64,000 nt of DNA from Octopus sinensis (Eukaryota): assembly GCF_006345805.1 (NCBI RefSeq), contig NC_043004.1, forward strand, positions 82,832,001-82,896,000. The letters are read 5' to 3'. The number at the start of each line of letters is the position of its first letter. Position 1 is the first letter of the stretch. The position numbers and the translations under genes were made by a program. The notes beneath the pieces are model-generated. The model searched no databases, was not told the DNA's origin, and saw only the letters and a list, made by a program, of their open reading frames with translations. Shown piece after piece: positions 1,630 to 64,000 of the stretch.

Positions 1630-1686
1630 ATGATTGGAAGTTTCATTACTTACATACTTCTGGTTATTCAGACAAAGCAATTATAA
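1630..1686 (+). CDS. GRL-A: terminal (TM7b) exon of a gustatory-receptor-like 7TM gene whose upstream exons lie before the window; MIGSFITYILLVIQTKQL*
   Basis: Polypyrimidine acceptor (tctcttttctgtttttcag|ATG), phase 0, TY-x5-Q motif, stop TAA 1684-1686. Closely similar to the GRL-D last exon, with a homologous 3' UTR and AATAAA at 2089-2094. Confidence 0.85.
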   Translation: MIGSFITYILLVIQTKQL

Positions 1687-3752
1687 ACGATGTCTCATTT
1701 TATTATGCATTTTCGATTGTAAGTAAATTCAGTACGAAGACGCCTTTAGCAGCACTACCTCACTATTTCACCATTAAATACCTTTGGAACGTGGGCACAT
1801 CTGCACTTTCTCAAGCAAGATTATTTTTTCTTAAAAGGTAAAGATGGGTAATGCTGAAGCGAGATCGAACGCCTTCTACCGGCGAAACCTCAGGATGATT
1901 CTATACTCTTTATTATCAGTCATGCAGCCATTGATTTTTCTGCTGGATTATTTATAACTGTCTGCCATCTTTTAAGTAAAATTGTATAAAAATATATATA
2001 TTCACACAATGATTTTTCCGTCTGTATTTTAATTTTCCTGCTACCACATCTGCACATGTTCTACTTGTCACCTTTTCTCATTTACATAAATAAAAAGCAC
2101 CAATATATTACAGAAAATACATTATAAATGCTCAACCTTTCATTTCCAAACTTAATCTTTCGTATATTCTAGAAATAAAATATCAGAATGAAACCAATTA
2201 CTGAGTTCAGTTTTAATTTACTTTACAATATGTATGTGCATCAAAGTGAAAACAAATATTTCAAGGCAAAGATTCCTTTTATTTCTAAGTGATGCATATG
2301 TCATTTTATGCAACAAGGACGAAATTAGCAGATATAGGTTATCTCAGTTAGTTCAATCTCAGATAACAAACTATGATTGCATGTATGGGTAACGTGAGTG
2401 GTAAGACCCAGATACTTAATTATATGGTTAATACAAACATGAACAAACAGAAAACACAACAACGCGAGGACGTGGAACAATTATAGTGTTCTTGGACGCT
2501 CAGGAAAGGAAAGAAAGAAGGATTAATCAACGTTTCGAGCGGAGCATTTGCTTGTATATTATTATTATATGTTGCTACAATCATGGCACTCCGTCGGGTT
2601 CGACGACGAGGGTTCCAGTTGAACCGATCAACGGAACAGCCTGCTCGTGAAATTAACGTGCAAGTGGCTGAGCACTGTCTTGAATAAAAGTGAGAAGTTA
2701 TCCTAACGGTTTCGGTTGCTGTAGAAAGACGACTTAGTCATGATGAAATTTTAACAAAAAATGAATAGATTGTATTTCATCAATGTTCCATGATATTAGT
2801 TCTTCAATCTCACTTTTTTTTTTACGAAATTCACATGCTGCCGTTGTTTTGTTTACTTTTCTATGTTACCTGGTCGTGGTGGTTTTCGCAACAATAGCAG
2901 CCTGAGTGGACGTCGCTAGTTGCAGTGACAAGTGTGGCAGCCGGTAGCCGCAGCAGTTGGAATGTTGGTAAGTCAATCGGTTGTGTAATGTCAAGCAATT
3001 TACCACTACCAGTAGATGTGGCAAATTTACCGATGATTTCAGCATGTTTATGGCAACTAAAACAAAGATTGTGGTTGGTTTAGCAATCGATAGACAAGCA
3101 TGATTGATATTTGGTGATGGAATTTGTTTCTATAGCGATACGTTGTAATTTCATCGCGGAACCCGTACCATCTGAAGAAAATGCAGCTGTAAATATGAAT
3201 TACTTTTTTCTGGTGAAACCATGGCGAAAAATAGTTTCAAGTATCATATTTAGAAAGGGAAATTTGAATTATTGAGAGGTTACTTATGGGGTAAGTAAAG
3301 ATTATGAATTACGAATATGACTACGAATATTCAGAAATATCTTCTTCACATATATACTATAAAGCTGGACACATACATCGACGACAGAGTCGTTCTATGA
3401 AATGAAAGCGTAGAGAAATTAAAAGAATTCAAAACACTCCACTTTAAGTTAGAAAAAATGTTCACCATGGAATCTAGCAGGACACAACTCATTTTTAGTA
3501 AAATTCATCAGCGAAGTCAACGACTAAAGAGAGATAGTTATGATGAAGCTTAGGCTTAAAACAATATCTTCTTTTGAGTTCAATACATTCCAAACAGAAG
3601 AGAATGTTTCTTATAACGTTAGCCTAAAGAAGTTCCAAACTGCATCATATATATATATATATATATATATATATATATATATATATATATATATATATAT
3701 ATATATATACACCGTATATATATATATATATATATATATATATATATATATA

Positions 3753-4269
3753 CCGTATATCCTCGAGTATAGTCCGCACTTTAGTATAAACGCAGGGGAT
3801 GGTTAGGGCGCTTTACCTCTGAAAAACCTAAACTTTTTGTATAATGCGCACTCCTTCTCTAACTTGAGTCAAAGATGTCTATTTAACGTCTTTGGTTTGT
3901 AAAAATGTATAAGGTAACATCCTTTATTATTATTATTATTGTATATAGAACTTAATGCAAACGTGTAACTTTTTTGTACATTTTGTTTGCAGTAAATAAA
4001 GAAATAACAGTAATAACGTGTAGTAAATGTTGCTTACTGCAAGTTATGGATGATTCCTTTATGACTTCATTGCTTTCAGGCTTAGCTTAATGTATTTTCG
4101 CGCCCGACATCACAAAATGCGTCTGAATAAACATTGCCGGACGTCAAATAGAAACTAGGACATTTCTTAGAAAATATTTTTCATTTTTAACGTCGTATAT
4201 AGTACGCACTAGGGATTTTGACCTTTAAATTTTGGTGAAAAAATGCTGTTTATACTGGAGGATTTACGG
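3753..4269. mobile_element. Non-autonomous Tc1/pogo-type DNA transposon (MITE)
   Basis: Terminal inverted repeats CCGTATATCCTCGAGTATA ... TATACTGGAGGATTTACGG flanked by TA on both sides, inserted in a (TA)n tract. Confidence 0.7.
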
Positions 4270-61587: not shown

Positions 61588-62630
61588 AGGCCGTCACAAA
61601 GGTGAGGGAGACAGTCGTCAGAGACTCTCTTTGCTGACGACTGCGCCCTTAACGCAATCGATGAGCAGGAGATGCAACTCGGGATGGACAGGTTCTCATC
61701 AGCCTGTGACAACTTCGGTCTCACCATCAGTGTCAAGAAAACCGAAGTGATGTTTCAGCCAGCCCCCGGCAAACAATACCATGATCCTCAGATAAAGGTG
61801 AACGGACGGATCCTACGAGCGGTGGAAAACTTCACCTAACTGAGCAGCACTCTCTGCTGCAATGCCAACATAGATGCTGAAATCATCAACAGAATCTCCA
61901 AGGCAAGCAGCGCATTTGGGAGACTGCGAAAGAAAGTCTGGGAGCGGAGAGGAATCAGCCTCAACACCAAGCTGAAAGTCTACCGGGCAGTCGTGCTTAC
62001 CACCCTACTATACGGCTGCGAGACGTGGACTGCTTACCGAAGGCACGAGCGCCAGATAAACCACTTCCATCTCAGGTGTCTTCGGAACCTCCTTCACATC
62101 CGCTGGCAGGACAAAGTCCCAGACACGGAAGTTCTGAAGCAGGCAGATCTCCCTAGCACCATCACGATCATGCGCAAGGCCCAGCTGAGATGGGCAGGCC
62201 ACGTCTCCCGCATGTCCGACATTCGCATCCCAAAACAGCTCTTCTACGGTGAACTCAGCCAGGGCAAACGCAAAGTCGGAGGGCAAAAGAAGCGCTTCAA
62301 GGACAGTCTCAAAGTCTCTCTCACGGACTTCTCCATCGGCACAGAGACTTGGGAGACACTTGCTGCCGACCGCTCATCTTGGCGCAGCGCAATCATCACA
62401 GGAGCAAAGACAGCCGAGGAGAGACGGATTCAGTCAGCAGAACAGAAACGCCAGATGCGGAAAGCCAGAGCCACCTGCACCAATAGCACAGCCCCTACCC
62501 ACTTCTGCCCCACCTGTGGGAGGGGCTTTCTTGCCCGGATCGGCCTCACCAGCCACCTCCGGTCTCATAGCAGCAATTCCACCAAATGATGTCAATGGTC
62601 ATCTTCGAACCCGAAGGACGAACATTATTA
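61588..62630 (+). mobile_element. 3' fragment of an RTE (BovB-like) LINE
   Basis: LFADDCAL...GLTISVKKTEVM...LLYGCETW...QLRWAGHV...C..CGR.F..RIGL.SH.R.H; one in-frame stop near 61837. Confidence 0.88.
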
Positions 62631-63524
62631 TTAATAAATACTAGAAAATTAATTTAATGTAATGATTGTTGTTTGTTCCTTCTCGAGCCATGCCTGGCTC
62701 ATAAGGGCCGGTTTTTCAATTTGTGGGCGTATAGGTTCCCCACCTGGTCGGGACGCCGGTCCGTCGCAGGTGAGCTGCAAGATGTAGGAGAAAAGAGTAA
62801 GAGAAAGATGTGGCGGAAGAGTCAGCAGAAGTTCGCCATTACCTTCTTATTTTTTTACTGCCCACAAGGAGCCAAACATAGATGGGACAAACAAGGACAG
62901 ACAAAGAGATTAAGTCGATTACATCGACCCCAGTACGTACTGGTACTTAGTTTATCGACCTCGAAAGGATGAAAGGCAAAGTCGACCTGGGCGGAATTTG
63001 AACACAGAACGTAACGGCAGACGAAGTACCTATTTCTTTACTACCTACAAGGGGCTAAACACAGAGAGGACAAACAAGGACAGACAAACGGATTAAGTCG
63101 ATTACACCGACCCCAGTGCGTAGCTGGTACTTATTTAATCGACCCTGAAAGGATGAAAGGCAAAGTCGGCCTCGGCGGAATTTGAACTCAGAACGTAGCG
63201 GCAGACAAAATACCGCTAAGCATTTCGCCCGGCGTGCTAACGTTTCTGCCAGCTCGCCACCTTATTTCGCCATTACCTTCTGCCGGACCCGCATGGAGCC
63301 TTGGTGTTTCGCTCATCAACACACACATCGCCCGGTCTGAGATTCGAACCCGCGATCCCTCGACCAAGAGTCCGCTGCTCTAACCACTAGGCCACGTGCC
63401 TCCACTAATGTAACGATAGTGTGTCAAAAAGGAAACAGCACATAGGAATACCATAGTATTTTTCTAGGTTTCCAAGTATTATATAAGTCGGCGGGGGATG
63501 TATGTAGAATATTTATATATTTAC

Positions 63525-64000
63525 CTTTGAATTGATTTGTAATCCGTTGTATATTAATAGTATGCTATAAATTCCATTCAATGATCCGAAAATGATCTGA
63601 AGTGCGTAAATGGTTGGGGTTTGTACCTGCCTCGCAACTTCGTTTACTATAAGGCAACAAATAACCAATGAACTCACAACAGCGATAGCAGATGAATATT
63701 GAAGAACTGCATTCATATATTTTAATAAATCGCAGAGCTTGCCATGATTATTTATTATCTCAGTTAGATCTTCGTTGCAAGTAACTCTTGTATGATTTTC
63801 TTTATATTCGTTCAAAATATTTAGGAACATCTGCGTTATATGTTTAAATTCATTTGTTACAAGTAATAGGAATGTATGAAGACTTACATTCCAAGCTGAT
63901 TGAAGAAAAAAGACCCAGATATTTGTAATACAATTCAAAACTAACATAATATTATAACTGAAAGATTTGTGATTTTCAGTTTGTATAGGATATGTTAATA
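63525..64000 (-). CDS. GRL-F exon 1, 3' part (TM4-TM6); runs off the window end
   Basis: Frame open from 63998 (LTYPIQTENHK...) through NEFKHI and HGKLCDLLKYMNAVLQ to NGLQINSK; donor AAG|GTAAAT at 63525/63524. Confidence 0.88.

Follow-up and report, generated by a model that had tools for sequence, protein, structure and literature searches.

A gustatory-receptor-like gene cluster of Octopus sinensis, probably built from variable first exons that share a set of last exons

The DNA region analyzed here is a 64,000-nt stretch of the Octopus sinensis genome (contig NC_043004.1, positions 82,832,001–82,896,000 of the forward strand; hereafter, the window), which carries exons of gustatory-receptor-like (GRL) genes. 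The window is AT-rich (G+C 29–43%), contains zero Ns and is rich in microsatellites, in repeats resembling short interspersed nuclear elements (SINE-like repeats) and in retrotransposon open reading frames (ORFs). It is collinear, in reversed orientation, with O. bimaculoides CM046608.1:5,555,293–5,641,280 (locus L002), at 85–88% nucleotide identity; the flanking DNA is likewise 85–88% identical and aligns with gaps. Four long hydrophobic ORFs are present, termed A (10321–10905, plus strand), B (19679–20662, plus strand), C (43616–44740, minus strand) and D (63513–63947, minus strand), the reading frame of D being open up to the window end. The first-pass annotation, made from the sequence alone, had assigned these four ORFs to one paralogous family, completed by short exons that the ORF track does not reveal. 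All four could be located and are mutually homologous in tblastn searches of a 64-kb database (A/B, E 1e-27; B/D, 1e-8; B/C, 1e-3), and the short exons were found as well, with AG/GT boundaries in phase 0. The gene parts identified, including the transmembrane (TM) helices that they encode, are the following.

1630..1686, plus strand: Z, the terminal exon (TM7) from a B-type GRL unit that lies upstream, MIGSFITYILLVIQTKQL and stop, with the acceptor TTTTTCAG and the TM7 motif.
10321..10994, plus strand: A, decayed B-type first exon; an ORF of 194 codons, with a frameshift near 10890.
14565..15152, plus strand: A2, B-type first-exon remnant covering the first ~120 codons, with stop codons and an insertion of ~190 bp.
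19679..20632, plus strand: B exon 1 (variable), 318 codons encoding TM1–TM6, with the phase-0 donor TCG/GTGAGT; 47% identity to protein P0001.
30733..30801, plus strand: B-type shared exon 2, 23 codons, VHSITESINFMQFQGIKQEAVSK, AG/GT, phase 0.
32770..32859, plus strand: B-type shared exon 3, 30 codons, IFVLLNRLMTESHEIDVGGCFVITPSSTLT, encoding TM7a and the beginning of TM7b.
34928..34987, plus strand: B-type shared exon 4, 19 codons and stop, MMGSFITYIMVVIQTKDLE, encoding TM7b with TY-x5-Q.
43742..44740, minus strand: C, first exon, divergent and intact, of 333 codons, with the donor AAG/GTAAGT.
63525..64000, minus strand: D exon 1, the final variable exon in an array on the minus strand, donor AAG/GTAAAT.
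59484..59552, minus strand: D-array shared exon 2, 23 codons, AHQLVDHIYAMPLHDLSHEAIIK, AG/GT, phase 0.
57868..57957, minus strand: D-array shared exon 3, 30 codons, LSFFLHRLTSEQIGISIGGCFVINPASVLT, AG/GT, phase 0.
54326..54379, minus strand: D-array shared exon 4, 17 codons and stop, LIGSIITYSIVAYQTRS, AG/GT, phase 0.

In both B and D, exon 2 measures 69 nt and exon 3 measures 90 nt, and three phase-0 introns lie near the C-terminus. Exon 2 was located via a weak B/D match and then confirmed, all-frame pairwise blastp being dominated by SINE and microsatellite matches. The exon junctions are covered by database proteins: UniProt A0A0L8FXQ7 (O. bimaculoides, 60 aa) spans D exons 2–4 with 59 of its 60 residues identical, XP_052825885.1 likewise spans the D exon 2–4 junctions, and the B-type junctions are covered by O. 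sinensis XP_036361419 and XP_036361423. Residues 70–94 of the latter match B-type exon 2, and the C-terminus of the former is 77% identical to Z. The B-type exon 3 has its ortholog at L002 83992–83904 (89% nucleotide identity). Two of the shared motifs put forward initially, GGCFVI.P and GS.ITY.....QT(K/R), are as described, but EF.K(L/I) and H..L..LL...N..(L/F)Q are exact in some copies only.

Several of these parts are incomplete. The start of Z is also the point at which the finding of the first-pass annotation begins, and the remainder of the Z gene lies outside the window. Homology in A stops at ~10994, with TM5–TM6 and the donor site absent, and A2 is 56% identical to residues 24–119 of protein P0010. 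Only the 3′ 158 codons of D exon 1 fall inside the window; its ortholog is a 360-codon ORF closed by a stop, with ~357 codons up to the donor. A stretch encoding GCFVQHP (12737–12778) was considered as exon 3 of A and rejected, as it has neither splice sites nor flanking similarity.

Both strands of the whole window were scanned, the queries being exon profiles at first and 117 family proteins afterwards. These scans give two exon-2/3 sets and three last exons, as against six first-exon-like units. On the plus strand, the dead exons A and A2 and the intact B precede a single constant set at 30.7–35.0 kb; on the minus strand, D precedes its own constant set (59.5–54.3 kb) in an array that continues beyond position 64000. 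As there are two exon-2/3 sets for six units, as A and A2 are dead and as Z amounts to one exon, these are not six separate genes, and the earlier proposal of six loci that each comprise a large first exon and three introns holds in the window for B alone, the only complete unit. Judged from their sequence, A, A2 and B follow one another as first exons within a single unit, and only B among them is functional. The array to which D belongs has its other members beyond 64000, D being the last of its first exons, and with Z the end of yet another B-type unit is seen.

The corresponding layout is seen at larger scale in O. bimaculoides. On one strand, L002 carries nine intact first exons of 354–382 codons, together with one N-terminally truncated first exon and about four fragments. 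These ~14 first-exon units all lie upstream of a single exon 2–4 set (69542–69610, 72540–72629 and 75935–75985), and all nine intact exons end in phase 0 at donors GTAAGT, GTAAGA or GTAAAT. Two annotated products (GCA_001194135.2) use this set: one of 273 aa, in which unit 1 (10001–10609) continues into the constant exons, which lie 59 kb further downstream, and one of 187 aa, in which unit 2 (from 12221) is joined to them over 57 kb. RefSeq names of relatives bear the label "isoform X2/X3". At locus L003 of O. vulgaris, a single constant set follows four nearly identical first exons of C type, two of which are passed over in the gene model. These four exons (L003 4776–23988, OX597821.1) are 93–98% identical to protein P0111, which indicates that variable exons were duplicated in tandem very recently. 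The last exon of another GRL gene, 93% identical to A0A0L8FL56, is found at L002 2362–2448 (plus strand), just upstream of the D-type array; at least four GRL subfamilies are thus neighbours. The notion of a locally expanded cluster in a cephalopod genome is borne out.

We next consider the family to which these exons belong. The spliced D fragment matches the Pfam family 7tm_7 with 42.7 bits (E 6e-11), above the cut-off of 26.6, in the hidden Markov model (HMM) search that had been advised, and also matches Trehalose_recp (24.3 bits, cut-off 21). B is linked to D in tblastn at E 1e-8. When six first exons of L002 were conceptually spliced to the constant exons, proteins of 415–431 aa resulted; each of the six aligns to 7tm_7 along most of the profile's length (23–43 bits), four of them above the cut-off, and two also exceed the cut-off of 7tm_6. 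An exhaustive search was performed with a three-sequence profile (B, D and P0001) against 1.84 billion proteins at E ≤ 1e-3. It returned 95 matches, as compared with only one and five relatives in word-indexed protein searches. Octopus and Sepia proteins are among the 95, as are Lottia V4C6X0 and a Batillaria protein, both named "Gustatory receptor", and a Haliotis cluster with one member named "gustatory receptor for sugar taste 64a-like".

A profile of 59 family sequences was compared with solved structures and matched gustatory receptors (GRs) of insects as well as their odorant receptors (ORs) over nearly the full length: Gr64a at E 5.7e-18, MhOR5 at 6.4e-13, Orco at 8e-13, Gr43a at 1e-9 and BmGr9 at 8e-6. 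B alone, searched with phmmer against PDB sequences, gave no match. The spliced B protein has 390 aa, with hydropathy helices at approximately 46–64, 78–96, 131–149, 174–204, 262–280 and 291–309 plus a C-terminal one, helices 4 and 5 being separated by a loop of ~55 residues. An AlphaFold2 model of B computed from the 59-sequence alignment has a mean predicted local distance difference test (pLDDT) score of 89.9 and a predicted template modelling score (pTM) of 0.89; with a 3-sequence alignment, pLDDT was 48 and the model unusable. The helices of the 59-sequence model span residues 36–66, 71–96, 129–153, 172–221, 229–280, 288–327, 336–351 and 366–385. Hydropathy and model together give B seven TM helices, a long TM4–TM5 loop and a split TM7. 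The fold comparison that had been advised was run on the B model: in Foldseek against PDB, the top 24 matches consist of OR, Orco and GR chains from insects and nothing else (probability 1.00, template modelling scores 0.50–0.72), matches beyond these have E > 0.1, and no G-protein-coupled receptor (GPCR) is among the significant ones. Z, B and D all carry TY-x5-Q, and C-type relatives have SY-x5-Q. The TY-x5-Q and the C-terminal phase-0 introns invoked by the first-pass annotation are both there, except that the final F of TYhhhhhQF is replaced by T. Since HMM and structural similarity are present and a GPCR fold is not, the family assignment stands: on HMM, on profile matches to solved structures and on predicted fold, the octopus family belongs to the insect GR/OR seven-transmembrane (7TM) ion-channel superfamily.

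Taken together, these data lead us to read the window as part of a GRL cluster built as variable/constant units and belonging to the 7TM ion-channel superfamily, a reading to which we assign a probability of about 0.8. Several points weigh against it. Regarding family, B alone stays below the 7tm_7 cut-off (23.9 bits without exon 2, profile positions 24–368), its C-terminal half reaches 21.1 bits on that profile, a Pfam search of the full 390-aa B model gave no reported match, and the TM7 motif terminates in QT, not QF. Regarding architecture, the window has one intact first exon per constant set, alternative use being seen only in the ortholog. There, both isoforms that share the L002 constant exons are computational gene models, N-terminally truncated; no assembled-transcript protein with constant exons was found in an index of 5.8 billion proteins; and masked runs of N in L002 could hide exons. 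Regarding function, GRLs outside arthropods have known non-chemosensory roles, as Nematostella GRL1 has in body patterning. Caenorhabditis elegans LITE-1 is a further non-arthropod GRL with a non-chemosensory role.

Unit C, intact and under constraint in both species, is also an objection, as it falls outside the scheme: no constant exons are detectable downstream of it. Its position is downstream of the D constant exons and ahead of the point where the B unit ends convergently, and up to there no exons 2–4 for it are detectable in the window or in O. bimaculoides. Neither exact-length enumeration of AG..GT intervals, nor the exon profiles, nor an O. sinensis C-type protein revealed exons 2–4 of C in the window, and the islands conserved with O. 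bimaculoides that were inspected for them are microsatellites only. A segment encoding LIGSVIMYIV (28564–28614, minus strand) was considered as the last exon of C and rejected, since it lacks both an acceptor and the Q. In O. vulgaris, the C-type exons, which are only 75% identical to the window, possess a constant set of their own. It is possible that the partner exons of C are more than 43 kb distant, that they were recently lost, or that C is used otherwise.

What these channels do is a separate matter. From sequence, a sensory and probably chemosensory role of the octopus GRLs is plausible. The alternative that they are real GRL channels with a non-chemosensory function, in light or redox sensing, temperature sensing or developmental signalling, is possible but lies on the unlikely side in our estimate. 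Nematode LITE-1 and GUR-3 sense light or redox state, and Gr28b(D) senses temperature; non-arthropod GRLs of known role are not classical taste receptors, the sequence gives no indication of ligand or tissue, and no product of a sensory-tissue transcript was found in the 5.8-billion-protein index. The evidence set against this alternative is circumstantial and consists of the lineage-specific tandem expansion, the frequent pseudo-exons and a ratio of nonsynonymous to synonymous substitution rates (dN/dS) of ~0.5 in TM1–TM6 versus 0.20 in the pore exons.

These ratios come from the comparison with O. bimaculoides. The ortholog of C (L002 79705–80703) has 91.9% nucleotide identity, zero indels in 999 nt and a dN/dS of 0.52; for the D first exon, dN/dS is 0.44, and for the D constant exons 2–4, which are 97.6% identical, it is 0.20. 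C and D are open in the two species, at 8–10% divergence and with no indels. A conserved pore and anchor module, faster-evolving TM1–TM6 and scattered dead copies are typical of chemoreceptor families. The same figures bear on the possibility that the cluster is mostly a decaying relic, its first exons being pseudogenes still open by chance and its gene models artefacts. A, A2 and several L002 units are fragmentary, annotated products are short, transcript-derived proteins were not found in the 5.8-billion-protein index and C has no 3′ exons, all of which would suit a relic. Yet nine first exons of 354–382 codons are open in an AT-rich genome, C and D have remained open with dN/dS of 0.44–0.52, the constant exons are 97.6% identical in comparison with ~86% for the flanks, and GTAAGT donors are conserved. 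The dN/dS of 0.20 versus 0.44–0.52 and the lack of indels in C, as opposed to gapped flanks, thus argue against a pseudogene graveyard, and we consider the relic explanation very improbable. A tandem series of six independent GRL genes, all with a private first exon and three private C-terminal exons, is scarcely credible: paralogous first exons are indeed dispersed along the window, and B, with its complete exon set, and D, with its first-exon end and exons 2–4 in the window and the rest from the ortholog, can both be read as four-exon genes, but two exon-2/3 sets and three last exons serve six first-exon-like units, A and A2 are broken, and the ortholog has ~14 first-exon units for a constant set common to two annotated products.

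Under the variable/constant reading, the following mechanism can be proposed. Each first exon of ~320–380 codons has its own ATG, encodes TM1–TM6 and ends at a phase-0 GT donor, and one shared set of 23 + 30 + 17–19 codons encodes the TM6–TM7 linker and TM7; this much of the architecture is observed. If the octopus genes work as insect Gr28b, Gr39a and BgerGr60a-m do, every first exon would have a promoter of its own, and the donor of the transcribed first exon would be spliced to the first constant acceptor, skipping the first exons in between. Downstream first exons would lack an acceptor and be removed with the intron. TM7 in the solved insect OR/GR tetramers lines the pore and forms the cytoplasmic anchor. 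The resulting isoforms would differ in the ligand-facing TM1–TM6, whose helices form the wall of the ligand pocket in insect ORs and GRs, and have an identical pore and anchor helix, and the subunits may, by homology, assemble as tetrameric ligand-gated cation channels.

A 62-nt element occupies 19342–19403 (plus strand), ~275 nt ahead of the start codon of B. It shares 85% identity with L001 259–320, more than the coding exon of B shares with L001 (~69%); it may be a candidate promoter or 5′ untranslated region element. None was seen upstream of the other first exons, and a conserved element of the protocadherin kind, upstream of every octopus first exon, was looked for and not found.

A more far-reaching version holds that arrays of at least ten first exons form a promoter-choice system, which places one ligand module per sensory cell on a common pore helix, that this layout is ancestral to protostomes or older, and that the family constitutes a second ionotropic repertoire. 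We regard this version as improbable. If it were true, the layout of a long first exon and three shared exons would not be an insect invention, and octopus GRLs would be a second ionotropic chemoreceptor repertoire beside the chemotactile receptors derived from nicotinic acetylcholine receptors (nAChRs). Octopus contact chemosensation is now attributed to chemotactile receptors, and a constrained, locally expanded GRL family is a second candidate. The presence of the same splicing layout in insects and in a mollusc bears on the age of that layout, which also gives an annotation rule for GRLs in other spiralians.

Current annotation reflects the family in part. The octopus GRL family is already predicted in databases, though in fragmentary form. 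RefSeq lists LOC106880487, LOC106880719 and LOC128248505 in O. bimaculoides and LOC118764606, -607, -608, -609 and LOC118764447 in O. sinensis, all as "uncharacterized protein" and most with "isoform X" labels, and UniProt automatically names A0A0L8FL56 and A0AA36B3N1 "Gustatory receptor". Most annotated products are fragments of 60–273 aa, and the B first exon has no identical or near-identical database protein, the best match being 47%. The expectation that annotation would miss or fragment the family is accordingly right as to fragmentation and as to B, but the family itself is already in RefSeq and UniProt. It follows from the variable/constant layout that standard gene predictors undercount octopus GRLs; the nine intact first exons of L002 are represented by two partial annotated products. 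GRLs in Mollusca have been published before (Robertson, 2015, and Eyun, 2017, as cited in PMC7746228 and PMC5850775). No published description of cephalopod GRLs was found in the literature searched, an absence that is no proof of nonexistence.

Intron 1 of B contains ORFs of a non-LTR (long terminal repeat) retrotransposon (23737–27292, minus strand), with RVT_1 at 24546–26144 (E 1e-29) and zf-RVT at 23737–24549. Intron 3 of D contains a 180-aa ORF (56534–57076, plus strand) that matches GIY-YIG only weakly, at E 0.0025 and short of the cut-off, and could be what is left of a Penelope-like element. A SINE-like core of ~100 nt with a (TA)n tract occurs in many copies, at 36400–41700, 18200–18700, 33100–33550 and 54700–54950, partly in tandem arrays with a period of 150–177 (37044–37793, 38673–38958 and 41222–41572); these SINE-like/(TA)n repeats occupy the region where the 3′ exons of C would be expected. 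Between 60000 and 64000, G+C rises up to 43%, and an ORF at 61993–62589 (plus strand) resembles the C-terminal part of a retroelement protein, for which Pfam gave no match.

When compared with insect GRs and the 7TM superfamily in general, the octopus proteins agree in full-length HMM and profile homology, in fold matches restricted to OR, GR and Orco, in the seven helices with a long TM4–TM5 loop, in the TY-x5-Q of the last helix and in the three phase-0 introns near the C-terminus. They differ in that octopus B is only 11–14% identical to the solved insect proteins, in the QT that stands in place of QF at the end of the motif, and in length, octopus GRLs having 390–430 aa whereas the insect chains have 472–478 aa (Gr64a, MhOR5 and Orco) or 443 aa (Gr43a). 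As for gene structure, tandem first exons with one short 3′ exon set are shared with Drosophila Gr28b, Gr39a and Gr23a and with Blattella Gr60a-m, a locus of 13 alternative first exons; some first exons of alternatively spliced insect Gr loci are pseudogenic (PMC6175461; Robertson et al., 2018). Unlike in loci of the Gr28b/Gr39a type, the octopus introns are far longer, the distance from first exon to constant set being up to 59 kb, and alternative use is predicted from gene models.

Within molluscs, Lottia V4C6X0, the Haliotis 64a-like protein and the Aplysia GRLs of Robertson (2015) are of the same family (profile E 1e-9 to 1e-13), but the cephalopod members form subfamilies of their own, with the nearest non-cephalopod match at E ~1e-14 or weaker. 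Octopus chemotactile receptors resemble the GRLs in being an ionotropic sensory family, for which the GRLs are candidates only, and in their tandem expansion in octopus. They are of unrelated origin, with a pentameric Cys-loop fold as opposed to the 7TM, presumably tetrameric, fold of GRLs, and have demonstrated ligands and sucker expression, whereas octopus GRLs are known from sequence. In the clustered protocadherin and UGT1A loci, promoter-linked variable first exons are cis-spliced to shared 3′ exons; their proteins are unrelated to the octopus GRLs, and the architecture is the same.

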